Assembly (NCBI GenBank): GCA_951406725.2
Contig: OX597816.1
Coordinates: 145,142,001 to 145,206,000, forward strand
Reading direction: 5' to 3'
DNA: 64,000 nt
Origin: Octopus vulgaris
Lineage: Eukaryota
Part shown: piece by piece, positions 20,710 through 43,743 of the stretch
Numbering within the stretch: position 1 is the first letter of the stretch
How the letters are laid out: each line of letters opens with the position of its first letter
Notes under the pieces: model-generated
Seen by the model: only the letters and a program-made list of their open reading frames with translations
The model's database searches: none
Told to the model about the DNA's origin: nothing
Position numbers and translations under genes: made by a program

Positions 20710-23215
20710 GGTAAGTCCTCCTCTTCCCGTCTGTCTTGATAGACAATGGGTCGCGCCAAGAGTGGGGCCTACTTTGATGATGAGCAGCGTCTGCTGTGAC
20801 TGAACAGTCCAATTCTAGAGTGGCAGTCCCTGATACAGTTGCTGCACACGAACATCGATGGGTACGTGTGGGGTGTTGCTGCAGTTGTCCTCCTCCTGTC
20901 CCGCCTGTCCGACCACAGCTGTGCTCTCCTTTCCTCAGCCATGGAAACGCCTTTCCTCACTGTCCGACGCCAGGCAGAGCGGTCAGCAGCTGTTACCTCC
21001 CACGTGTCCACACAGATGTTGGCAGTCCTCAGGTCGCGCTTGCACACATCCCTGTATCGTAGCTGTGGACGTCCCTTGGGTCGGGATCCCGTGGTGAGTT
21101 CGCTGTACAGGATGTCTTTAGGCATGCGACCGTCCTGCATGCGGCAGACGTGTCCGAGCCAGCGCAGTCGTCTCCGCACGAGGAGGGCATGCATGCTTGG
21201 CATATTAGTCTGTTCTAGGATGACTCCGTTTGGTACTCGGTCCTTCCAGGATATGCCAAGGATCCGTCGAAGACACCGCATGTGGAAGCTGCTGAGGCGG
21301 CATTCTTGCCGGGTGTATGTTGTCCAGCTCTCGCTGCCGTAGAGTAGGGTGCTCAGCACGCAGGCTCGGTACACTGCGATCTTGGTGGTTATTGTGAGCA
21401 TGTTGTTTTCCCACACTCTCCTGGAGAGCTTAGCCATGGCAGCAGCAGCCTTCCCAATCCGTCTGTTCAGCTCCGGCTCGAGGGACAGGCTGCTGGAGAC
21501 CGTCGATCCCAGGTAAGTGAACTCGTTCACCACCTGCAAGCTGTGGTCGCCGACACTGATGCTGGGGACCCCTCCGACGTCATGGCCCATGATCTCTGTC
21601 TTTTTCAGGCCGATGGTAAGGCCGAACTCTTGGCAGGCATCCGCCAGGGCACTGACCAGCCTCTGGAGACCCGGCTGGTTGTGTGATGTTAGGGCGGCAT
21701 CGTCAGCAAAGAGGATCTCTCTGATCAGCACCTGACGGACTTTGGTCTTAGCTCTGAGGCGCGCAAGACTGAACAATCCACCATCAGCCCTGGTGTGGAG
21801 GAACACTCCGTCGTCGGACGTTCTGAAGGCATAGGACAGGACAAGGGAGAAGAAAATTCCAAAGAGCGTCGGCGCCAGAACGCAACCCTGTTTCACTCCA
21901 CTCTGGATGGGGAACGACTCCGAGGGCGATCCGTCAAACTGCACTGTTCCCTGCATACCGTCGTGAAAGGAGGTAATGAGTTTCAGCAGTCTGGGAGGGC
22001 AACCTATCCTACTCAGGAGCGCAAACAGCCCCTCCCTTCTGACTGAGTCGAACGCCTTAGCCAGGTCGATGAAGGCCACGTATAGGGGCTGTCTCTGTTC
22101 TCGACTCTTTTCTTGAAGCTGCCTGAGTGAGAAGATCATGTCGATTGTAGACCTCTCTGCCCTAAAGCCAGACTGAGACTCGGGGTACACACGCTCTGCA
22201 AGCATTTGCAACCTCTTCAGGACCACCCTGGCAAATGCCTTACCGACAGTGCTGAGCAGTGATATGCCCCTGTAATTATTACAGTCGCTTCTGTCCCCTT
22301 TGTTTTTATACAGTGTGATGATGTTTGCGTCACGCATATCCTTAGGGACAGAGCCCTCCTCCCAGCACTGACAGAGCAGCTCGTGGAGATGGCCCAGAAG
22401 GGCTGGCTTCCCGCACTGGATGACTTCTGCGGGGATGCCGTCTTGCCCTGGTGCCTTGCCCCGAGCGAGTGAGTCAATTGCTTTGCTCAGTTCTTCCTTT
22501 GTTGGAGGCAGGTCAAGCTCCTACATTACAGGCAGAGCAGGAATGCCGGCGAGGGCAGACCTGGTGACCACATTCTCAGTGGAGTAGAGGTTCTGGTAAT
22601 GCTCGACCCACCTCTCCATCTGCTTCGCTTGGTCCTTGATGACCTCGCCATCCCTGGACTTTAGTGGAGCAACCTTGCTGACAGTGGGCCCGAATGCTTT
22701 CTTCACCCCTCGTACATCCCTTTCACGTTACCACTGTCAGCACAGCACTGGATATTCTGGCATAAGTTCTGCCAGTAGATGTTGGCGCAACGTCTGGCCG
22801 TCCTCTGGGCGTCGCTTCTGGCTGTTCTCAGAGTAGCCAGGTTCTTTTCTGATGGGTCGCGCTTATAGTTGACCAGTGCTTCCCTCTTGGCAGCAATGAC
22901 AGGCTCCATCTCAGGCAGGTGAGCTTCAAACCAGTCTTGATTTCTCCGCTCCCTCTTTCCTAGGGATGACATGGCTATTCTGCAAGTGGTGTCGCGAATA
23001 AGCTGCCATCTCTCCTCGATGGACGTGGCTGCGTGATCTTTAAGGGCCTCCTCCATGCGGTTGGTGAATTCTGAGCGGAGGTCGGGGTTGGTTGTCCTGG
23101 CGGTGTTGATGCGTGGGTGGCTTTTCCCTACGGGACGGCGGATTTTCTTTGGGGCCAATCGGACCCTGCTGCACACCAGAGAGTGGGCTGTATCACAGTC
23201 AGCACCATGGTAAGT
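20710..23215 (-). mobile_element. RTE/BovB-like LINE, 5'-truncated, with 7-bp TSD GGTAAGT (20710-20716 and 23209-23215)
   Basis: Begins at the end of the APE domain (YHGADCDTAHSLV), has a full RT and a C-terminal CSNC..DCHSRIGLFSH finger; short 3'UTR with a tgtct-atca-agaca hairpin and GAA/GAG tail. One frameshift near 22705 and one premature TAG at 22521-22523. Confidence 0.93.
20769..22337 (-). CDS. RTE reverse transcriptase plus C-terminal zinc-finger-like region (open 522-aa part of a disrupted ORF)
   Basis: NYRGISLLS, QSGFR, FIDLAKAFDSV, GVKQGCVLAP, LFADD, FTYLGS, RRLRWLGHV motifs. Confidence 0.9.
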   Translation of the reverse strand: MRDANIITLYKNKGDRSDCNNYRGISLLSTVGKAFARVVLKRLQMLAERVYPESQSGFRAERSTIDMIFSLRQLQEKSREQRQPLYVAFIDLAKAFDSVRREGLFALLSRIGCPPRLLKLITSFHDGMQGTVQFDGSPSESFPIQSGVKQGCVLAPTLFGIFFSLVLSYAFRTSDDGVFLHTRADGGLFSLARLRAKTKVRQVLIREILFADDAALTSHNQPGLQRLVSALADACQEFGLTIGLKKTEIMGHDVGGVPSISVGDHSLQVVNEFTYLGSTVSSSLSLEPELNRRIGKAAAAMAKLSRRVWENNMLTITTKIAVYRACVLSTLLYGSESWTTYTRQECRLSSFHMRCLRRILGISWKDRVPNGVILEQTNMPSMHALLVRRRLRWLGHVCRMQDGRMPKDILYSELTTGSRPKGRPQLRYRDVCKRDLRTANICVDTWEVTAADRSAWRRTVRKGVSMAEERRAQLWSDRRDRRRTTAATPHTYPSMFVCSNCIRDCHSRIGLFSHSRRCSSSK

Positions 23216-24280: not shown

Positions 24281-24833
24281 GCCCTTCCTTAATTTTTCTT
24301 AAGGCTAATAGTAGTAAACATCTGAACTTTTTTTGACCCCACCAAAAAAAAAAAAAAAAAGAAAAAAAAGATAGTAATAGTGCTGATATTCTATCTATCT
24401 ATCTACACACACACACACAAACCTCACCTCGGCTCTATTGTTAACCAAATATGAAAGTATTATTTGACAGGCAAGAACTCTGGCGTTGAAGACAGTCAGC
24501 CAGCCAACCACCAAGCCAGCCAACGAGACAGACAGACACTACTGTGATGGTGATAATGATAAAAAAACAAAAATAACAATAATAAGATACTGCTGTGACT
24601 ACACATAAAACAATATCATTGATGATGATGGTGGTGATGGTGATGGTGATGATGATAATGATGATGGTAATGGTGGTGATAATGATGATAGTGATGGTAA
24701 TGGTGAAGATAATAACAATAATAAGCCGACTACGGCTGCTATAATGGTACGATTATAATTGTAACGGCAATGATGGCCGTCTCCCCACGAGCCAATCAAA
24801 GCTCAAAAATGATAACATTATCGTAGCACCAAA

Positions 24834-26153
24834 ATGTTTTTGGAAACTAAAAGGAAAACTAAATCAGTATACCAAATCGCTTGTCCTATGGTTAATCTGG
24901 AAGCGCGTTCCCCAGGGAAGAGCCAGCCTGGGATCGAAAAGTCATCAACTGGCACAAACTCTTCTCCGAATACGGACATGGATGGTCACTTGAACGGGAA
25001 ATCCCCCAACTCGAGCCCTCCAAGTTCACCACCACAACCACCACAGAAAGAAAAATGTAAGCGGAACAAATGGACCCGAGAAGAGTATAAAGAAGTAATA
25101 TACGCTTATTACTATGCATTAGGTAGGCCATCTCAAGAGAGACACACCGCAAACTCTTACAGTATATGGAGAACACGGAATCAAGACAGTAGGCCCTATT
25201 TGGACGAGAACAAATTAGCAAATGTGAGGAGGGATATCTTTAGAAATAACAGACTCACAGACAGTGAAATAAGTGCGATCAAGCACGCAACGGAAAATGA
25301 CATAAATATAAGACACAAAGGAAATGAAGAATCAGATGAACAGTATAGCCCGCCACGAAGCTTAATTGAAAGACTGCCATCTGACCAAAGTACGCAAAGG
25401 CCTGAAGATACAAGAAATTCTATTGTACCTGTTAAAGATAGCCAGGAAAACGAAAAAACAACAGTAACTGAAGATCTCGCATTTGCTGAAGAACACAGAG
25501 AGTCTATGGCAGAAATGAGGCAGAAAATCCTGAATACGCTTGAAGTTGTTAGACATACAAGTATGAATGATAGAGAACCGCTTCATAAACTCTCAAATAC
25601 AAACCAAAATAAAAAACAAATCCAAATTGGCAACTATGTAACAAATGAAATAATACGAGAATTAAAACCTGATTTTACTGAGTTAAATGAAATTATTTAC
25701 GCTTCTGCTAGGGCAATTGAAACCAGCTGTATGCCCCCGAAAAAACAAAGAAAACAAAACCTGGGAAGAAATCAAACCTGGAGAAGTAAAATTGAAAAAG
25801 AGATTGAATTTATGAGAGGGGAAATATCAATATTAAATGAACTAATATGTGGAAATGATGTAAGATCCAGAACAGGAAGAAAGATGAAGAGAAAATTTGG
25901 ATCCTCACCAAGAGAAGAACTGATATCAATAAAAGAAACGCTGAAACAAAAAGTCCAAGCAAAAGCCCAAAGAATACGAAGATTTGAGAAGAGAAACAAG
26001 TTTTACAAGCAAAATAAGCTGTTCACATCCAATGCCAAACAATTCTACAGAGAAATAGGGAAGGAGAAAGTAACCGTTAAAGACCCCCTCCCATGGAAGA
26101 AGTTCAAAACTTTTGGGAAAGGATTTGGAGTGACAAGAAGACGTACAACATAA
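24834..26153 (+). pseudogene. R4/Dong ORF, N-terminal part (Myb-like motif region)
   Basis: RNKWTREEYKEVIYAYYYA...W....N motif and LKQKVQAKAQRIRRFEKR..FYKQNKLF, typical of the R4 clade; frameshifted into the next ORF. Confidence 0.8.
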
Positions 26154-27466
26154 ATGCAGACTGGATTATACAAACTGAAGGATCCTACCAAAATTTACAA
26201 CAAGCATGGGAAGACATCACAATAGCAGACCTAAGAAAGGCACTCACGAAGGCCCATAATTGGAAATCCCCCGGTAAAGATAGGGTGCCGAATTTCTGGC
26301 TCGCATCGCTCCCGTGCGCACACGGTAAGCTAGTTCAGCTGCTCATTGGAATTTTGAGAGACCCAAAGAAAACACCTGAATGGTTAGCAAGTGGCATTAC
26401 TTACCTACTCCCAAAGAATAACGAAACCAACCTTCCAAAAAACTATCGGCCTATAACCTGTCTATCCACGACGTATAAAATCCTAACATCTATCCTGGCG
26501 GAGAAAACATATGCATTCATGGAGAAGAACGATATTTTCCCCATTGAACAAAAAGGGTGCCGCCGAGGCTCTTACGGATGCAAAGATCAACTGCTAATCA
26601 ATCGTATGATCCTTGAGAACTGTCACAACAAGCGCAGAAATCTCAGCACCGCATGGATTGACTATAAAAAGGCCTTCGACGGTATACCGCATCCATGGAT
26701 CTTGAGATCGCTGGACATCTTCAAAATTTCCCCTGTGATTTCAAACTTCCTGAAGCACAATATGTCGTTGTGGAATACGAATCTCCAATTATACCACTCT
26801 AATGGAGTACTTGCCTCAGAAAATATAAACATCAACTGTGGAATTTTTCAAGGTGACTCACTTTCACCTTTAATATTCTGCATAGCCCTAATACCCCTTA
26901 CAAGTGAATTAAACAGAACAGGGTATGGGTATAAAATTGCCAATAAAAAAATAAGCCATCTATTTTATATGGATGACTTAAAACTTTATGGTAAAGACAA
27001 TAATGAACTTGAAGGCCTATTGCGCACCGTGAAAGCATTCAGCGATGACATCGGGATGGAGTTTGGACTTGAGAAGTGTGCCAAGGCCACTTTCCAGAAA
27101 GGGAAAGTGAAGACCACAAATTCAGTCGTGTTAGATGTTGACACAGTCATAAGAGAGCTTGAGCAAGAACAGACATACAAATATTTAGGGATAAATGAAG
27201 GCTCTGGTATTCAGCATGCAAGCATGAAAGAGAAAATCAGGAAGGAATGTTATAGGAGAGTTCGTGCAGTCCTGAAATCTGAACTAAATGCACGTAACAA
27301 GGTGTTAGCTATAAATTCCTTAGCAGTTCCAGTTGTTACTTATAGCTACAATGTGTTGAACTGGAATATGAGTGAAGTAAAGAACATAGATAGAAAAATA
27401 CGCAAGCTGCTGAGTTGTAATAGGATGCACCACCCAAAGGCAGAGTCGAGGCCTGATCCAATTTGA
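26093..27466 (+). pseudogene. R4/Dong reverse transcriptase domain
   Basis: NYRPITCL, EQKGCRRG, AWIDYKKAFD, GIFQGDSLSPL, YMDDLKLYG, YKYLGI motifs. Confidence 0.93.
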
Positions 27467-27687
27467 ACTAGCTTACAAAACAACCACAATTGGACTGGCC
27501 AAATATCTCGAAATATCGAATGACTGGATGCTAAAGCTCGTGGAAAATCACGAGAGACGAAAGAAGCTTCATTCTATCATCAAGGAAAGCAAAAAATTTG
27601 CTATTGATCTCGTGCAGGATACCCAAACTGAACAACCCGAGGGAAGTACGGCAACTATTGTTGCAAAGAAGGTGAAAATGATGGCAA

Positions 27688-28485
27688 ATGAAAAAAGCGC
27701 ACGAGCAATTGGCTGATAGGTGCGAGGAGAAACCTCTGCACGGCAAATATGTGACCCGCAGCAGACAAGCTGATGTTGACCAGAAGCAAACCCATCAGTG
27801 GCTGCGGAGCTCAGGGCTAAAAGCAGAGAGCGAAGGTTTCATCCTGGCTGCTCAAGACCAAAGCCTATTAACCCGGAACTACCAGGCCAATGTGATGAAA
27901 AATGGAGCAGACCCAAAATGCCGATTCTGCAACGACATGATTGAAACAGTGGACCACCTAATCTCTGGATGTAAAGTCTTAGCACCAGTGGAGTATAAAT
28001 TAAGACATGACAGAGTTGGCCAATATCTACACTGGCTAATAAGTCGGCATTACAATATCAAAACTGCCGACAAGTGGTATAATCACCACCCTGAGGCTGT
28101 AACTGAAGGAGAAAATGTAACCATTCTGTGGGACTTTCCAGTACATACAGACCGAACCATCAAGGCCAATAAACCAGATATTGTTGTGAAAGACCAAAAC
28201 AATAAAGTTTGCTTATTGATCGACATGAGCATCCCCTGTGATCATAATATCTTAGCGAAAGAGTTTGACAAGCTCAGAAAATATAAAGACCTACTCATTG
28301 AAATTGAGAAAATGTGGCATCTCAAGGCGGTTACAATACCAGTGATCGTAGGAGCACTAGGAATGATCAAGAAGGGAACCGAAAATTATATGAGAATGAT
28401 CCCTGGCTTACCATCCCTGCAAGAAGTGCAAAAGATTGTCTTAACTGGTACATCACACGTATTGAGAAGAGCATTGTCGATGTGA
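27688..28485 (+). pseudogene. R4/Dong C-terminal CCHC finger and restriction-like endonuclease
   Basis: CRFCNDMIETVDHLISGC; KPDIVVKD...LLIDMSIP...K..KYKDL. Confidence 0.9.
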
Positions 28486-30850: not shown

Positions 30851-33178
30851 TTATTGCTTATTTAGCTTGGGTTCGAATTTATCAATAAAATTCTTTTCTC
30901 TGATTTTCCTCTCGATTTCACTTGGGCTGTGTAATTTGTAGAATGGAAATATTATATATATTTTCCGACCACATGTTGCTAGGTGGTTACTCAAAGGTAT
31001 CTGACGGACCTCTGGGTCTCTAATCTGTTGCCGGTGTACACGTGAGCGTTCTAATAGTGCGTTTCCCGTCTGACCTACATATATTTCTTCACAATTTGGG
31101 CATTTGATGCAGTAAATTAAATTTCTGCTTTTGCAGTTCATATTCGCGTTTGTGAATATTTTCCCGCTTTTTGTGTTTATATATTGACCGGTATGTATGA
31201 ATTGGCATGTGCCACATCGGCTATCATTGCATTTAGATACCGTGAATGTTTGGTCTTTGTTGCTGAGGTCAAATTTTGCCTTTGTTAGTAATGTTTTCAA
31301 GTTTTTAGGCTGTCTTTTACTAAGCACCATAGCTCGATCCTTGATTATGTCTTTTAATTCATTACTTTGGGCAATGATTGGTAGGTTTGCTTTGGCAATG
31401 TTGAAGATATTCTGGTGACATGGGTTGTGTGTCACTATGAATGGTATGACTTGTTCTTGTTTTCCTCTTCCTTGGGTTGTCCTAAGTTGTTGTATAGGTA
31501 TTTTTATAGCCCGCTGTATGCCATTTTCTATAAGTAGAGATGGGTATTTTTGTTTGAGCAAAAATTCTCTTAGTTCTATTAGGCGTTTGTTCCTGATATT
31601 TGCATCTTCTACAATAGTACAAATTCTTCTGGCTAGGCAGTATGGGATGTTACGTTTTGTATGTGGTGGATGGCACGACTTAAAATTTAGGTATTGATGT
31701 GTGTCTGTGTGTTTATAGTATATATCTGTGGTGATGGTGGTGTCTTTTTTAATTACCATTATATCCAGGAATGGTAATTTGGTACTACTCATCTCCTTTG
31801 TAAATTTGAGAGATGGGTGTAGGTTGTTCAGGAGGATATTGAACTCTTCCAGAGTATTTAGAGATTCTGTCCAGATTATGAAACAGTCGTCTAGGTATCT
31901 CTTCCATGCCTTTTCAATATACTTTCTAAATCCAGTGCCATAGTTTACCTCCACCTCTTGGTAGAGTTGTTCTTCTAAGTATCCCATTACAGAGTTGGCG
32001 TAAACGGGAGCAAACCTCGTTCCCATCGCCGTGCCTCTAATTTGGATGTAATTCTTTCCATTGAAGAAGAATGTGTTATTTTCTAGAATAAGTTTGACTG
32101 TGTCTAATATAAATGGCACTGTGAATCTGCTGGGAATCACTTCTCTATGTTTTTCTAACCAGTATTTAATCGCCTTTATTCCTAAATCGTGTGGAATATT
32201 GGTGTAGAGGCTTACCACATCAAAACTTAGTAAAACTGAATTTGTTTCTGTTGTTTTGGGAAGATGGGACAGGAAGTCGATGTCATCCCTGATGAAACTT
32301 GGTATGTAAGTACATAGTGGTTTCAAAACAATGTCAATAAAATTGCTTAGACGGTGTGTAGGGCATGCTGGACCAGCTATAATAGGTCTAAGTTTTAGGT
32401 CTTTTGGATGTAATAATTTTATGTACTCACTTTCTTGTTCTTTTACTGCCTGTTGAATGTTTTTTGATTTGTGTATTTTTGGTAAACCGTAGAAGTTGCT
32501 GGGTTTTGGTTCAAAATTGGTGATGTAGTCTTTTTCATTATCCGTAAGTGAGTTGTGGTGTGTTGAAATCAGGTTGTTGATCTTTTTCATGATGTGGTGG
32601 TCTATATTTGCGGGTATTTCACAATAGAAGGTTGTATCCTTCAGTTGGTCTTCAACCAAATCCTTATAGTATTCGGTATCCATAATAACAATTGCACCAC
32701 CTTTATCTGCTTGTTTAATTATTATTGTTTGATCGTTTTGTATACGTTTACATGCAGACATCTCTGATTTGCTAATGTTTGGCCTAACATTGGTATTGCG
32801 TCTAAGGGGAAATTTAGACAGGATATCAATGTATTGGTCAAGGTAGTTATTTCTTCCTTTTGGTGGGGTGAAATTTGATTTATTCCTTACTAGGGATTCA
32901 TCAATCTCATTACTTTTGTTAGCGAAGAATTCTACAAGTCGTAATTTTCGACAGAATTTTTGGATATCCTCCTTTAATTCTTGGTGGTTGGCTGTTGGTG
33001 TAGGTGTGAATTTCAGTCCTTTTGACAGAAGTTGGATTTCATCATTGTCAAGATCTCTTTTTGATAAATTAATTATTTTAGGATCTATACGTTCAGTTGT
33101 TTGGGGTATGTTTCCTCTTGGATTTTTTCTTTCTCCGGTGTTTGTTGTCCTGACGTAAAAAAATGGATTTTTTTCTGG
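30851..33178 (-). CDS. PLE ORF2: reverse transcriptase + GIY-YIG endonuclease (775 sense codons stop-to-stop; first Met only at 32761)
   Basis: Hand translation upstream of the listed 636-aa ORF gives IINLSKRDL..DEIQLLSKGLKFTPTP (PLE N-terminal motif). RT: SFDVVSLYTNIP, GTAMGTRFAPVYAN, RYLDD, LPFLD. EN: CKSRNLIYCIKCPNC..IYVGQTG...R..H...E..FI....PKLN. Confidence 0.92.
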   Translation of the reverse strand, partial: PEKNPFFYVRTTNTGERKNPRGNIPQTTERIDPKIINLSKRDLDNDEIQLLSKGLKFTPTPTANHQELKEDIQKFCRKLRLVEFFANKSNEIDESLVRNKSNFTPPKGRNNYLDQYIDILSKFPLRRNTNVRPNISKSEMSACKRIQNDQTIIIKQADKGGAIVIMDTEYYKDLVEDQLKDTTFYCEIPANIDHHIMKKINNLISTHHNSLTDNEKDYITNFEPKPSNFYGLPKIHKSKNIQQAVKEQESEYIKLLHPKDLKLRPIIAGPACPTHRLSNFIDIVLKPLCTYIPSFIRDDIDFLSHLPKTTETNSVLLSFDVVSLYTNIPHDLGIKAIKYWLEKHREVIPSRFTVPFILDTVKLILENNTFFFNGKNYIQIRGTAMGTRFAPVYANSVMGYLEEQLYQEVEVNYGTGFRKYIEKAWKRYLDDCFIIWTESLNTLEEFNILLNNLHPSLKFTKEMSSTKLPFLDIMVIKKDTTITTDIYYKHTDTHQYLNFKSCHPPHTKRNIPYCLARRICTIVEDANIRNKRLIELREFLLKQKYPSLLIENGIQRAIKIPIQQLRTTQGRGKQEQVIPFIVTHNPCHQNIFNIAKANLPIIAQSNELKDIIKDRAMVLSKRQPKNLKTLLTKAKFDLSNKDQTFTVSKCNDSRCGTCQFIHTGQYINTKSGKIFTNANMNCKSRNLIYCIKCPNCEEIYVGQTGNALLERSRVHRQQIRDPEVRQIPLSNHLATCGRKIYIIFPFYKLHSPSEIERKIREKNFIDKFEPKLNKQ

Positions 33179-34326
33179 TTATGATTTATATTCCTGTTGA
33201 TGTTTGCTTGATGAATTTTGCGTTTTGGTTGTGGTACTTTACTTGGTTTCGTTATGTTTTCTGTCTTGTTTTTGGTATTATGTATGCTACTTGTCAATTT
33301 CTTGTTAGCATTGTTTTTAACCACCTGGAGAAATGATCTGGGTTTACTTCTAGATCTAGATCGGTTTTTTGTCCAGTTTCTTGTGGGTAATCTCTGTTGA
33401 GGTCTTGAAAATGATCTCCTGTTATTTCTACTGCTAATGGTCTGTTCAAAACAATATCTATTTTGTTTGTGCTTTTTGTTCATGTGTGCATTAGGGTGTT
33501 TGCATACAAAATGGGAAGAGTTCTTACCGTAGTTCGTCTTCGATTCGTGGTGAAACGGTTGTTCATGTTGCCACGTGTTCTGGTGTATGTTGCGTTGGTG
33601 AGGTTGTCCACTTTTAATGCTATTTCTCGGAGTTCTGGTGTCTTTACCGTAATTTGTAGCATATTTGTCTAGAAATAATTGTTTCCGCTGCCAAAACTTT
33701 CTTGATCTGCTTTCTTCTTTTGAGATATCTCTGATCCATAGTTCTCGCATTTTTTCTGCTATATTGCCGGTCGTTAGTTTGGATATTTCATCTCTGATTT
33801 GATCATCGATAGCTTCGTATTTGGCTTTGTAGCGGGATTGTTTAGACAGGGTAATGGAGATGTCGGTCCTGAATTTTATCAAACTAAGGTCCCATCGAAG
33901 TTTAGTTTCTTCCTCTGGTTCTCCTGCAATTTCTTTAATTAGGTACTTCCGAGGAAGTATGGGTGCCGCTAAAGATATCCATTTCGAATGTATTTCAGCA
34001 TATTTTTCGCATTTATATGCCTTCCAGAAGTTTTGTTTTCTTATGTTAAGGAGTTTTTTCCATGTCTTCTGTATCTCTTCTCTTTTTCGGTGTGCCTCTT
34101 TTTCCAGATTTCTTTCGTTTATTTCTGACATCCAAGGAGGTTGTGGTAGGCTTTCTCTTGTAGATTTTATAATTGTTGGTATCATTTCAGCTAAATTCTT
34201 AATTTCAGAGTTTATGTGTTCATTTCCAAGTTTTCCGTCTGTAGACTGTTTTTCTATTTCCTTTAAAATAGAGGATTGTGTGTCAATCATCGTGATGAGT
34301 GTTGATAATTTCGATGAAATTTCCAT
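33085..34326 (-). CDS. PLE ORF1, 413 aa, helical N-terminal half and basic R/S/K-rich C-terminal half; function unknown
   Basis: Uninterrupted frame from ATG 34326 (MEISSKLS) directly upstream of and overlapping ORF2. The extra 37 N-terminal residues in the track run through a (TA)n repeat and are probably spurious. Confidence 0.75.
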   Translation of the reverse strand: MEISSKLSTLITMIDTQSSILKEIEKQSTDGKLGNEHINSEIKNLAEMIPTIIKSTRESLPQPPWMSEINERNLEKEAHRKREEIQKTWKKLLNIRKQNFWKAYKCEKYAEIHSKWISLAAPILPRKYLIKEIAGEPEEETKLRWDLSLIKFRTDISITLSKQSRYKAKYEAIDDQIRDEISKLTTGNIAEKMRELWIRDISKEESRSRKFWQRKQLFLDKYATNYGKDTRTPRNSIKSGQPHQRNIHQNTWQHEQPFHHESKTNYGKNSSHFVCKHPNAHMNKKHKQNRYCFEQTISSRNNRRSFSRPQQRLPTRNWTKNRSRSRSKPRSFLQVVKNNANKKLTSSIHNTKNKTENITKPSKVPQPKRKIHQANINRNINHNQKKIHFFTSGQQTPEKEKIQEETYPKQLNV

Positions 34327-34429
34327 TAGAATTCTTTCGGATTCTGTATATATATATATATACATACACTGGGAAAGAAAGACTAGGTAGTGGGAAAGAC
34401 AAGCAACAACATAAGAGACACATGTCAGA

Positions 34430-35995
34430 CCAAACACGAACCGAAAGGGAAAAATAATAATAGCGTTACCAATAAGGAAGGGACAACTGGCACCAACGAC
34501 TTAAGTGATTTAAGTGAGGAAGATCAGAAGATTTTAGATGAGTTGCTGGTAGTAATGAGTAAAGAAGTAAGAAAAAGATTGCCAGCATTAAAAGACATCA
34601 ATGGAAGGAAGCTACAAGAAATGGCTAGGAAAGTAGATTCTGTTATCAGTAAGACAGATACTAAAATAGAGAAGACATTAACTTCTTAATCTATGCAGGA
34701 GGGGAAGTAGTCACCAGAAGATTAGATGCCTCACGGGGAAAGATTAAAAAAGAGCAAATGTGGAAAAGGAGATTACAAAATAAAGTAAAGACTTTAAGAC
34801 AAAATCTGAGTAGAATAGAAGCCTGGAAAAGAAACAAGTTAGAAAGCACAAGATGCAAATCTTCCTTCGGATAAAGATACTTAGTCAAAGAGAAAGGATT
34901 TGGGACAATAATAGACGAGTTAAAACAGCGTATCATAGCAGTAGCAGGCAAGCTCTCCAGATATCAGAAAAGAATAGATCGGTATCAACAGAATAGGTTA
35001 TTTGAGACAGACTAGAGGAGATTTTATAACCAAATAAATAATGAAGAACGAAGTACTGAAGATGAGAAAACTAATGCAGAAGAAGCTAGAAAGTGCTGGA
35101 GTAATATTTGAGATAAGCCAGTCAATCATAATGGAGATGCGGTATGGTTAAAAAAAATGGGGGAAGAAGTAGTGAGTGAGAAGCAGTGAGATCTAAGATT
35201 AACTAGTGCATTAATGAGTAAAGTGTTAAGACAAATGCCGAATGGGAAGGGCCTTTGGACTAGATTTAGTTCAAGAGTACTGGCTAAAGCAATTAAGTAG
35301 TTTACATGGGAGGCTGAGGGAACAACTTCAAGATTGCCTTAATGGAGGAATAAAACCAGATTGGATGACTAGAGGGAGAACAAAACTCTTTACGAAGGAT
35401 AAGAGCATGGATAATACAGCTAGCAACTATAGACCAATCACTTGATTACCATTAGTGTGGAAGCTGTTAACAGAAATGATTTCAAAAAGCATTTACAAAT
35501 CCTTGACAGCCAAAAGTTACTACCAGAAGAACAGAAAGGTTGTTGGAACAAGCCTAGAGGGAGGCATGATCTCTTATATACAGACAAAGCAGTTCTGAAT
35601 GAAGTAAAATCTAGAAAGAAAAATCTAACAATAGCATGGGTAGATTACAAGATAACTTATGACATGATCCAACACTCATGGATAAGTGAATGTTTGATTA
35701 TGTTCAGTATACCAGACAGCATAAGAGAATTAATTAGCTTTAGCAAAAAGAAACGGAAAGTAGATACTCAGATGACACACTCTTAGGGAAAGTTAATATC
35801 AAAAGAGCAATTTTCCATGGGAATTCGTTGTCCCCTTTAATATTTGTCTTATGTTTGATCTCACTCAGTTTAGTATTGAGGAAGGCAAAGGTAGGGTATC
35901 AGTTCAGAAATAGAAATGGAAAAATTAACCATGCATGATATGAAGCTTTTTAATAAGAATGAAAAAGAGATAGGTTCCTTAATACAAACTGTAAG
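34430..35995 (+). mobile_element. Decayed R4/Dong-like retrotransposon fragment, family D
   Basis: Broken frames with ELKQRIIAVAGKLSRYQKR, WLKQLSSLH, NYRPIT, AWVDYK.TYDMIQHSW motifs. Confidence 0.82.
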
Positions 35996-41408: not shown

Positions 41409-42635
41409 GACATGTAAAAGTAGTCAACAAAATCAGAGAAAGGAGTCATAAACGTAGATAGAGATGACGGGACAGAGAGAGAAAAACGAAGTTAAGAGAG
41501 AAGGACGTAGAGGTAATCAGGAAAATAGAGAGAGGTGAGAGAAAAAGAAAGCAAAGAGAGAAGGTGATGGAGAGAGAGAGATGGATGTAAATGGAAATGC
41601 AGAGACAGAGAGCGAAAACTGTGGAGATAAAAGGAACAGATAAATCACATTAAGAGAAATGGAGAGATAGAAGGAACGATATCGATAAATAGAAATCATT
41701 GAAGATATACATGAGCATCTGTAAGAAAGAGATAGAAAGGAGCAGAAGAGGAGACAAGAAAAACTGAAATAGGTAGATGAATAGATCGATGTAAATGTAA
41801 ATAGAGATACAGACACAACTCAAAGACAACGATAAAAATTCAATCTGACACCAGGCACATGATAATAAAAATAAAAATTGTCAGCATGCACCGAGGAAGC
41901 CAGGAAAAGGAGAGAATAATAAACTTATGTTGAGACTGGTCAGATAAAAAGAAAATAAAATTCTCCACGGTTTGACATGTTCTTACCTAGAATGAATGAT
42001 TTCACCTACGTGATTCGTTATAGAAATTGTAAGCTAACCTGAGGTTCCAGAAAATTTTGAATTTGATGTTTTAGGAATCTACAAAATTGCATACAAACAT
42101 TTGGCTTATACAAGTTGGAATCTTAACGACCGGAATTTCTCAGAAAAAGTACAGTCAAATGCAAATATCAATCTATATTTTACGCAACCCGTGGTTCACA
42201 GTGGGAAAATTCTTTATAACTGCGTAGCAATTCATTGACTGAAAGATAGTTTATATTATGGTATACTGGCAGTAATGTATTTCAAACAGAGGCCACCTGG
42301 ATTTCAGTTTAAATAGAACTGCTTGCAATTTTTCGAGGTTTTCCAGGAGCTTGATTTCACACACTTAATAAGTAGGCGTCTCATTAGTATATATAAATAT
42401 ATATAGTTGCTATTATGTTAAACTTTCGTATGTCCAAATTTGGTCAAATGCGCTTTTTTCAATATTTCTTTTTGCTTGCAGTAGCCGGTTCCTTTTGGCA
42501 AACTATCATATCTCCAGCTGCTTCAGATGCCAAGACATCAAAAACTGTCAAAATGTAGTACAACAGTTTTGCTCGATTCTTTCATTTTCTGAAAAAGCAA
42601 CGTTTTCGACTAAAGACACTTTTGCATAATAGCAA

Positions 42636-42679
<44 letters not shown>

Positions 42680-42718
42680 TAATCAAAATAAAAATATGAA
42701 CATGATGCCAAGGATTCA

Positions 42719-42796
42719 GCGGTACATATGTTTCGGGCCTTTATTAGACAGATTTATAACAATGCATAATGTGTGTCTATGGCCTTCTTCAGCCGC
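42719..42796 (-). ncRNA. Minimal type I hammerhead ribozyme (left arm)
   Basis: Minus strand: stem I GCGG / CUGAAGA / stem II A-GGCC...GGCC-C / GAAA / stem III AC-AUAU-GU / cleavage GUA / stem I' CCGC. Position 10.1-11.1 is an A-C mismatch. Confidence 0.75.
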
Positions 42797-43178
42797 GCAC
42801 AATCACTACCTCAAGGACATGTATTACATCAAAAATTCTACGTTGGGGATGCAAATCCTCTCAGTCGCGTCCTGAACTTTCACATTTTTATATTTTTTTA
42901 TCCTTCGTCCTGAACTCTCGCCCCTCCATCTTTATCCCTATTTACTCTTATTACCAGGTTCCTTCACGTCTGTCTGTATTTATATATGTATATATTTATT
43001 TATTCATTTATTTATATTACCTCAACATCCAAGCTTCCTCATTCTACATTGAGAGAAGGACGCGATGGACGCTTCATTTTTGTGCTGGTACCGCATTATG
43101 TCGTACGCAACTGAGAGGATTTGCATCCCCAACGTAGAATTTTTGATGCAATACATGTCCTTGAGGTAGTGATTGTGC

Positions 43179-43256
43179 GCGGCTGAAGAAGGACATAGAC
43201 ACACATTATGCATTGTTATAAATCCGTCTAATAAAGGCCCGAAACATATGTACCGC
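43179..43256 (+). ncRNA. Minimal type I hammerhead ribozyme (right arm)
   Basis: gcgg-ctgaaga-aggac...ggccc-gaaa-catatgta-ccgc; same fold with one stem II substitution (GGAC). Confidence 0.7.
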
Positions 43257-43366
43257 TGAATCCTTGGCATCATGTTTTTATTTTTATTTTTATTAATTTA
43301 CTCCACCACCTACACCACCAAACGGTATATACAGGTGCTTACAATTATCAAGTACTCACCCTGAAT

Positions 43367-43371
<5 letters not shown>

Positions 43372-43442
<71 letters not shown>
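43372..43442. repeat. (TA)n microsatellite
   Basis: Read directly. Confidence 0.97.
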
Positions 43443-43444
<2 letters not shown>

Positions 43445-43743
43445 TTGCTAAAAAAATAATAATAAATAAATAAATGAATGAATTAATAAACAAAATAATA
43501 TATAAATATAAAAACATACATACATATATATATATATATATTTGTATGCATATATTTAAAATTTATAAGTTTAAATTATTTTGATAATTTTTAAATTTTT
43601 AACTTTTATATTTTTAAATTAATTTTATGTATTAGCTTATGTTTTTCACTGTTTGATTTGTCTAACAGTGGTTTATTCTCTAATTTAATATATAATATTA
43701 TTTATATATATATATATATTTGAAAATGTATGCGTGACGTTCA

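Follow-up and report, generated by a model that had tools for sequence, protein, structure and literature searches.

Structure of the insertion on contig C3

The DNA analyzed here, referred to as the window, is a 64-kb stretch of Octopus vulgaris sequence that forms part of contig C3 in a 2.8-Gb genome. A repeat search identified within it two arms of 196 nt each, at 42675-42870 and 43105-43300, which are 96% complementary to one another, differ by seven mismatches and are separated by 234 nt. These data confirmed the two reverse-complementary arms of about 195 bp that had been described in an initial annotation of the locus. No ORF is present between 42675 and 43370.

By comparison with related loci elsewhere in the genome, the structure was resolved into two copies of the end of a Penelope-like element (PLE), lying with their 5' ends together and their 3' ends outwards. 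The left copy (42675-42870, minus strand) corresponds to the last 196 nt of the PLE unit and is 5'-truncated at the equivalent of position 43105. It ends at the unit boundary (...GATTAATTTA) and has no tail; at least 43 scored copies in the genome match it at 93-97% identity. The right copy (42877-43300, plus strand), also 5'-truncated, comprises the last 424 nt of the unit, i.e., the end of its 3' UTR; it is contiguous, at 92-96% identity, in loci L008, L010, L012, L018, L020, L024, L027 and L030, in all of which homology carries on upstream into an ORF. Between the two 5' ends lies a junction filler of six bases (42871-42876), delimited from the sequence and from the limits of homology. The right copy is followed by a 70-nt tail (43301-43370, plus strand) representing the first 70 nt of a next unit, the start of its 5' leader. 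This tail is found at one end only of the insertion. The tail brings the right copy to 494 nt, of which 70 nt lie beyond the unit boundary, and the insertion extends to 43370 rather than ending at 43300 as first annotated. The two flanking microsatellites, (AT)n at 42638-42674 (TA run 42638-42675) and (TA)n at 43371-43441 (TA run 43372-43441), are the left and right parts of the target tract. Each copy carries a hammerhead ribozyme motif, at 42719-42796 on the minus strand in the left copy (predicted cleavage between 42723 and 42722) and at 43179-43256 on the plus strand in the right copy (predicted cleavage between 43252 and 43253), with a ribozyme spacing of 521 bp.

The filler and its neighbouring bases form an 11-nt sequence, CGTCCTGAACT, at 42868-42878, which occurs a second time 38 nt further on, at 42906-42916, in the right copy. 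That this 11-mer is recreated where the two copies meet may point to a template switch guided by microhomology. Outside both (TA)n tracts, positions 42630-42637 and 43442-43449 are mutually reverse complementary (TAGCAACG(AT)n ... (TA)nCGTTGCTA). Before insertion, the target may therefore have formed a palindrome with (TA)n in the middle, whose left half is the end of a repeat of approximately 235 bp that lies directly to the left of the insertion (42405-42637) and is bounded by 12-bp terminal inverted repeats (GTTGCTATTATG ... CATAATAGCAAC). This repeat is dispersed in the genome (2781 first-look candidates, 82-86% identity) and looks like a MITE.

The parent element

The stretch from 42877 to 43370 was recovered as one contiguous sequence ending at (TA)n in many loci. 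Homology among these loci extended upstream in a stepwise manner, by approximately 330 nt, approximately 615 nt and more than 2.5 kb, into an ORF. Non-autonomous units of approximately 500 nt, then 820 nt and then 1.1 kb were each considered and dropped, as homology kept extending upstream. The parent element is approximately 4.7 kb in length, with a 3' UTR of approximately 2.2 kb. One locus (L035) has an intact ORF of 835 aa (364-2871 of that locus), a second (L033) has an ORF with one frameshift, and a genome search yielded many copies with open frames of 800-936 aa. The 3' end, ribozyme included, was common to 11 of the 12 open-frame copies that were fetched, with the match in the twelfth (L049) confined to the start of the 3' UTR. 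Since this end is shared with copies that have intact ORFs, the window contains truncated copies of a coding element and not members of a short non-autonomous family. The link to Penelope-like elements drawn in the initial annotation was thereby borne out, the annotated unit being the 3' end of a PLE with intact ORFs elsewhere. The accompanying idea of a discrete, protein-free, non-autonomous unit found no support, given that an autonomous element has the spacer and the right arm as one uninterrupted stretch of its 3' UTR.

The origin of the tail was established from three loci (L064-L066), in which the tail sequence links an upstream pseudo-LTR to the leader and ORF, with approximately 80 nt between the tail and the ATG. 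Because the tail follows the unit boundary in this upstream pseudo-LTR, it represents the start of the next unit. In the full element, the upstream ribozyme lies approximately 200 nt before the ATG. The tail was absent from the short 5' flanks of ORF loci and present once longer upstream flanks were taken.

The ORF contains the motifs PADKTG, FDIA.YY and YRDD, a CxCX5C linker (CNCICASEC), VIYSCEV...YIGCS, CQLC (CxxC) and CIH (CxH); the endonuclease motifs were identified by eye. In an alignment (A1) of the octopus ORF with eight relatives from other organisms, the motif columns were conserved, most of them being invariant or nearly so, with the octopus ORF reading IRWAAY where its relatives read RMRWKAY. 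Pfam searches of the cognate ORFs gave no matches even at E <= 10, the GIY-YIG model included. By BLASTP, the cognate ORF shared 22% identity (E 4e-5) with the reverse transcriptase (RT) of another PLE located in the window. Classification was based on the motifs, this BLASTP match and alignment A1. With Pfam silent, it is from its motifs that we assign the parent family to the Hydra clade of PLEs. The octopus ORF also has two low-complexity insertions of approximately 60-100 aa each, rich in N, S, T and P (A1 columns ~600-665 and 745-815), which are located after the RT thumb region and before the endonuclease linker and are missing from all eight relatives.

Hydra-clade PLEs have been described as possessing DKT instead of DKG, RWK, CxCX5C, no CCHH, and CxxC and CxH motifs near the E/N residues; they insert into (TA)n, carry hammerheads and are found in Mollusca (Craig, Yushenova, Rodriguez and Arkhipova, 2021; PMC8557442). 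The same study described, among PLEs, inverted copies with 5' truncation, tails confined to one end and a bias towards (TA)n. The octopus family resembles Hydra-clade PLEs in its single ORF with a C-terminal GIY-YIG-type endonuclease, its DKT motif, RW(K) region, CxCX5C, CxxC and CxH motifs and lack of CCHH, as well as in its (TA)n target, hammerhead, partial pseudo-LTR tandems, inverted truncated copy and one-end tail. It differs from them in the length of the element (approximately 4.7 kb as compared with "generally <3 kb") and of the tail (70 nt as compared with 30-40) (PMC8557442), and also in having RWA rather than RWK, the two low-complexity ORF insertions, a 51-nt helix II and a 3' UTR of approximately 2.2 kb.

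The hammerhead motif and its conservation

A type I hammerhead could be threaded base by base through both arms, from 42796 to 42719 on the minus strand and from 43179 to 43256 on the plus strand. Helix I is an open-ended helix of 4 bp (GCGG/CCGC), and the core reads CUGAAGA ... GAAA in both arms, such that the conserved bases C3 U4 G5 A6 N7 G8 A9 ... G12 A13 A14 are complete. Both arms also have the A15.1-U16.1 pair and A17, i.e., an H17 other than G. Helix II spans 51 nt, beginning with GGCC/GGCC followed by UAGAC/GUCUA. Helix III (AC/GU) closes the palindrome ACAUAUGU, which was found to pair between two molecules in cofolding, and the cleavage triplet is GUA. The motif lies 48 nt upstream of the unit boundary and is of the PLE type with a palindromic helix III, as had been claimed. 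The left hammerhead matches the family consensus save for one helix II base (42750); in the right hammerhead the family GGCC at the base of helix II has become GGAC (43193), creating a mismatch. As for the extension of stem I by GAUU/AAUC that was also proposed, three of its pairs are kept in the family consensus (AAUU) and the fourth is not.

A strict descriptor of our own matched a single motif in the 64-kb window, the one in the left arm, and nothing in 20 shuffles; a relaxed descriptor gave approximately 0.3 motifs per shuffle. The right-arm copy failed the strict descriptor because GGAC replaces GGCC at the helix II base. The presence of a hammerhead motif on each strand, as first annotated, was confirmed. 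Searches of the window and locus with Rfam (RF00163 and relatives) left the motif unreported, both at the gathering score and at E <= 10, with matches limited to TA-repeat artefacts such as mir-297. The failure of the Rfam covariance models to report the motif is likely to be due to the 51-nt helix II.

The hammerhead fold has a predicted energy of -13.2 kcal/mol and the minimum-energy fold one of -16.6 kcal/mol, a gap of 3.4 kcal/mol. RNA covering both arms is predicted to form a hairpin of approximately 196 bp (-355.9 kcal/mol, z -30.8), in agreement with the earlier proposal that RNA from either strand would do so. Given that read-through RNA from the window would fold into this hairpin, cleavage at the window copies appears unlikely.

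The octopus motif conforms to the minimal type I hammerheads reported from PLEs (Cervera and de la Pena, 2014; PMC4209133) in its 4-bp helix I, larger helix II and unpaired base after A9. It is also like them in the palindrome formed by 15.2-16.2 and loop 3, which implies dimer action, and in that most copies are single motifs in truncated PLEs. Its helix II, however, is much longer than in those hammerheads. A second difference concerns the base pair next to the core, for which a highly conserved G10.1-C11.1 was reported in PLE hammerheads (PMC4209133). In the octopus motif an extra A is present after A9, and a G10.1-C11.1 reading requires a bulged C; read otherwise, A-C is followed by 4 bp.

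Within the octopus family the motif is almost invariant, and it is unchanged between subfamilies whose ORFs are ~82% identical. This conservation covers the whole last 340 nt of the element and not the ribozyme alone, and no double compensatory change was found within the octopus family. We therefore also consider six distant Hydra-type relatives, obtained from metagenome contigs of other organisms. In all six, a hammerhead is present in the 3' region, between the ORF and the unit end; five of the six passed our descriptor, and the sixth, with a helix II of 2 bp, was read by eye. In the two with a visible (TA)n junction (L082, L083), the cleavage site is approximately 38-45 nt upstream of that junction, and several of the six have a second hammerhead upstream of the ORF. 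The sequences of helices I, II and III are all different among these relatives and yet are paired, the descriptor itself demanding pairing; shuffled controls gave at most 0.07 motifs per locus. Helix III is a perfect palindrome in ACUAAUUAGU and ACUAUAUAGU and a near palindrome, with one central base, in ACAGACUGU.

The relatives also bear on the A-C at 10.1/11.1, which the initial annotation had raised as a caveat. In five of the six, the motif reads CUGANGA-U-[helix II]-U-GAAA, with an unpaired U-U where octopus has A-C, and the A-C itself is fixed in all octopus subfamilies with intact ORFs. Octopus and five of six Hydra relatives thus have an unpaired A-C or U-U in place of the G10.1-C11.1 of other PLE hammerheads (PMC4209133). 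Because unpaired U's flank helix II in five of these six distant relatives, we interpret the A-C, from comparison of sequences, as a trait of the clade and not as decay.

These data must be weighed against the view that the motif is a relic with no catalytic role, or a chance match, at a 3' end conserved only for RT recognition or as a promoter. Such a view draws on the silence of Rfam, the A-C at 10.1/11.1, the 3.4 kcal/mol by which the hammerhead fold exceeds the minimum and the extent of conservation over 340 nt; in addition, PLE hammerheads cleave poorly in vitro (PMC4209133), and PLE clades without hammerheads spread well (PMC8557442). Nevertheless, every core base is present, and the hammerheads of six distant relatives occupy the equivalent position, with helices that pair despite their different sequences and with a palindromic helix III. 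Moreover, other hammerhead families of the octopus genome have a long helix II and palindromes (ACGAUCGU, ACGGCCGU) that share with the present motif the form AC-NNNN-GU. On balance, we consider a relic or chance match to be unlikely.

One of these other families (L068, L069 and L072, at C7:15930010, C1:98507175 and C15:53489332) exceeded the Rfam cut-off by a small margin. Its helix II measures 77 nt, its helix I reads GUAC/GUAC and its palindrome is ACGAUCGU; in L068 two copies are again arranged head to head. No PLE ORF was found within 1.5 kb of these hammerheads. In a further locus, L058, on mitochondrial contig C227, COX1 matches occur in three different frames, which suggests frameshift errors in that part of the C227 assembly. 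A COX1 fragment taken from this contig matches an Octopus vulgaris record at 100% identity.

Head-to-head pairs in the genome

A 31-mer taken from the ribozyme's 3' half had exact matches at 1516 genome sites (751 + 765), and a control pattern had none. Among the 100 of these 1516 sites that were listed, neighbours within 10 kb formed 27 head-to-head pairs as compared with one tail-to-tail pair (binomial p = 2e-7), and 54 of the 100 sites belonged to head-to-head pairs. Spacings within pairs ranged from 142 to 5138 bp in this listed set, with several near 411 bp. Same-strand neighbours in the same set were only found 4.7 to 8.2 kb apart, and short head-to-tail arrays were absent from it. The inverted architecture therefore does recur in other genomic copies, being the usual arrangement in this family, and the statement that PLE insertions are accompanied by inverted copies held true at dozens of head-to-head loci. 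A fixed inverted-repeat unit, on the other hand, was not sustained, since arm lengths and junctions vary between loci. Pairs of hammerheads on opposite strands, 100-700 bp apart, have been reported previously in Schistosoma (PMC4209133).

Nine pairs were examined closely. In all nine, the 5' ends abut without (TA)n between them, and a tail is present on exactly one outer end, a coupling that would have a probability of approximately 0.002 if the ends were independent. Single copies were evenly divided, 10 with a tail and 10 without. Family copies abut (TA)n at both ends. The junctions of the nine pairs differ, even at similar spacing, with several falling in a hotspot equivalent to 43036-43059. 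Snap-back self-priming at this hotspot was considered and set aside, as working by hand did not yield the junction of L029.

Two loci have more elaborate centres. In L026 (1744-2037), mirror-symmetric tandem copies of a segment of approximately 64 nt lie on both sides of the pair centre, and the junction of L021 (1409-1437) has a 27-nt filler of short palindromic units. Separately, three same-strand ribozyme sites on C1 (57297020, 57305159 and 57313314) are separated by gaps of 8139 and 8155 bp, a pattern suggestive of a longer unit repeated in tandem or of segmental duplication.

The pair in the window could in principle have arisen from two independent insertions of the same family into one (TA)n hotspot, their head-to-head placement being a matter of chance. 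In favour of this, the family prefers (TA)n as a target and numbers well over 1500 copies. Furthermore, the arms in the window are 3.7% apart, no closer than unrelated copies; this distance test is uninformative, however, because the family is a young, star-like burst. Since the window arms are no closer than unrelated copies, a single-event origin rests on the family-wide pattern and not on this locus alone. That pattern speaks against chance in the excess of head-to-head over tail-to-tail pairs among the sites listed, the missing (TA)n between the two 5' ends and the coupled tails. In the window itself, a rare G just 5' of stem I (42804 and 43171) is common to both arms and is found in 3 other copies among the 39 aligned. 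With one tail per pair in nine of nine, one event per pair is favoured, and we regard two independent insertions as improbable.

Neighbouring elements and the source of the machinery

A second PLE is located in the window at 30851-34500 on the minus strand (30851-33178 plus 33085-34500), with RVT_1 and GIY-YIG domains detected by Pfam. It has DKG, CX4CxxC and two Cys between GIY and YIG, as opposed to the DKT and CxCX5C of the cognate element. Judged by these motifs, the neighbouring PLE is Neptune-like and the cognate element Hydra-like, which would place them in different clades. No DNA is shared between the neighbouring PLE and the unit, and our descriptors found no hammerhead near it, including in its 3' flank. 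The neighbouring PLE has an upstream ORF of 471 aa, and its 3' flank ends close to a (TA)n tract. Two more sets of RT ORFs, at 20769-22520 (minus strand) and 24816-28485 (plus strand), have RVT_1 matches at E 1e-29 to 1e-33, followed in one of the two by zf-RVT; these are probably LINE-type elements.

The initial annotation had cast the PLE 8 kb away as a helper of the unit. This role fell away, as the two have no common DNA, the RT of the neighbour is 22% identical to the cognate RT, and no helper is needed. On the annotated reading, the structure would be a self-contained, protein-free inverted-repeat ribozyme element, similar to a retrozyme or MITE, that obtains its RT and endonuclease in trans from the neighbouring PLE. 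It is true that 42675-43370 has no ORF, that head-to-head pairs are frequent, several with a spacing near 411 bp, and that PLE ends are known to have given rise to non-autonomous derivatives (Li et al., 2026; bioRxiv 10.64898/2026.07.22.740005). Against this, the spacer belongs to the right copy and to the parent 3' UTR, junctions vary between loci even at similar spacing, spacings run from 142 to 5138 bp, and the parent family has intact ORFs; in addition, the neighbouring PLE differs in DNA and RT as just described, and there were no short head-to-tail arrays among the 100 sites listed. This reading is largely refuted, and we give it very little credence.

The window locus does share with non-LTR retrozymes a type I hammerhead from a PLE end, the lack of a local ORF and a dependence on PLE machinery (Cervera and de la Pena, 2020; Li, Clavereau and Pollet, 2026). 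Non-LTR retrozymes, however, are short head-to-tail tandems that give rise to circular RNAs, whereas the two copies in the window are inverted relative to each other and are truncated parts of a coding element. A non-LTR retrozyme was accordingly rejected on the inverted pair, its identity as the 3' end of a coding element and the lack of short tandems among the sites listed. A MITE or foldback DNA transposon was likewise rejected, because neither arm length nor junction position is constant between loci and the tail makes the two outer ends unequal. Finally, we consider it very improbable that the palindromic (TA)n tract underwent an inverted duplication at the DNA level or was wrongly assembled. 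Tandem and inverted PLE structures do trouble assemblies (PMC8557442), and the flanking sequences TAGCAACG(AT)n and (TA)nCGTTGCTA also form an inverted pair. Against this, dozens of loci show this architecture with junctions and arm lengths of their own, and the window arms have 7 mismatched positions, are unequal in length and do not share the tail, unlike a mis-assembled or fresh palindrome.

Discussion

Taken together, the data make it very probable that the window records one retrotransposition of an autonomous Hydra-clade PLE into (TA)n, which left two truncated head-to-head copies that inherited the hammerhead of the parent. Both copies are dead on arrival, having no ORF and one sense ribozyme per strand. 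The structure is of a known kind, and the octopus family, judged by its motifs, joins the Hydra-clade PLEs.

In full elements, with their pseudo-LTR or tandem arrangement, two sense ribozymes approximately 4.7 kb apart could pair through the palindrome ACAUAUGU. As proposed by Cervera and de la Pena, the paired ribozymes would adopt a dimeric active fold, by which the RNA would be trimmed to unit length. At the target, where the (TA)n tract is self-complementary, a break would leave two 3' ends, and each of these would prime cDNA synthesis on the PLE RNA, one of them at the unit boundary and the other 70 nt further on. Joining of the two cDNAs at their 5' ends would then produce the head-to-head shape.

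In L1 twin priming, both ends of the target break are likewise thought to act as primers, with inverted segments joined internally. The L1 segments are two different parts of one RNA, whereas the octopus copies both contain the same 3' end, and their outer ends differ in extent by a constant 70 nt.

The coupled asymmetry of the ends (nine of nine pairs, with singles at 10:10 and more than half of copies paired) raises a broader possibility, which we put forward tentatively. Every integration might use both ends of the (TA)n break, or the template might be longer than the unit or be a circular, hammerhead-processed RNA. Hairpin loci of 0.15-2.5 kb might then number between several hundred and a thousand in the genome. 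If this were true, near-perfect hairpin loci would constitute a sizeable class of dsRNA substrates in octopus for ADAR editing or small-RNA pathways.

For annotation, the present findings remove a false lead, in that the locus consists of routine truncated retrotransposon ends and is not a new ribozyme element. They also suggest, from sequence comparison, that hammerheads of the Hydra clade tolerate or even prefer a non-Watson-Crick 10.1/11.1 position together with very long helix II inserts; hammerheads of this form are missed by standard covariance models. Lastly, the octopus family is young and very abundant, with 1516 exact sites, many intact ORFs and sharp junctions, and as such provides a clean natural data set. 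Its head-to-head copies, one-end tail and (TA)n targeting make it useful for approaching the unsolved problem of how PLEs integrate.
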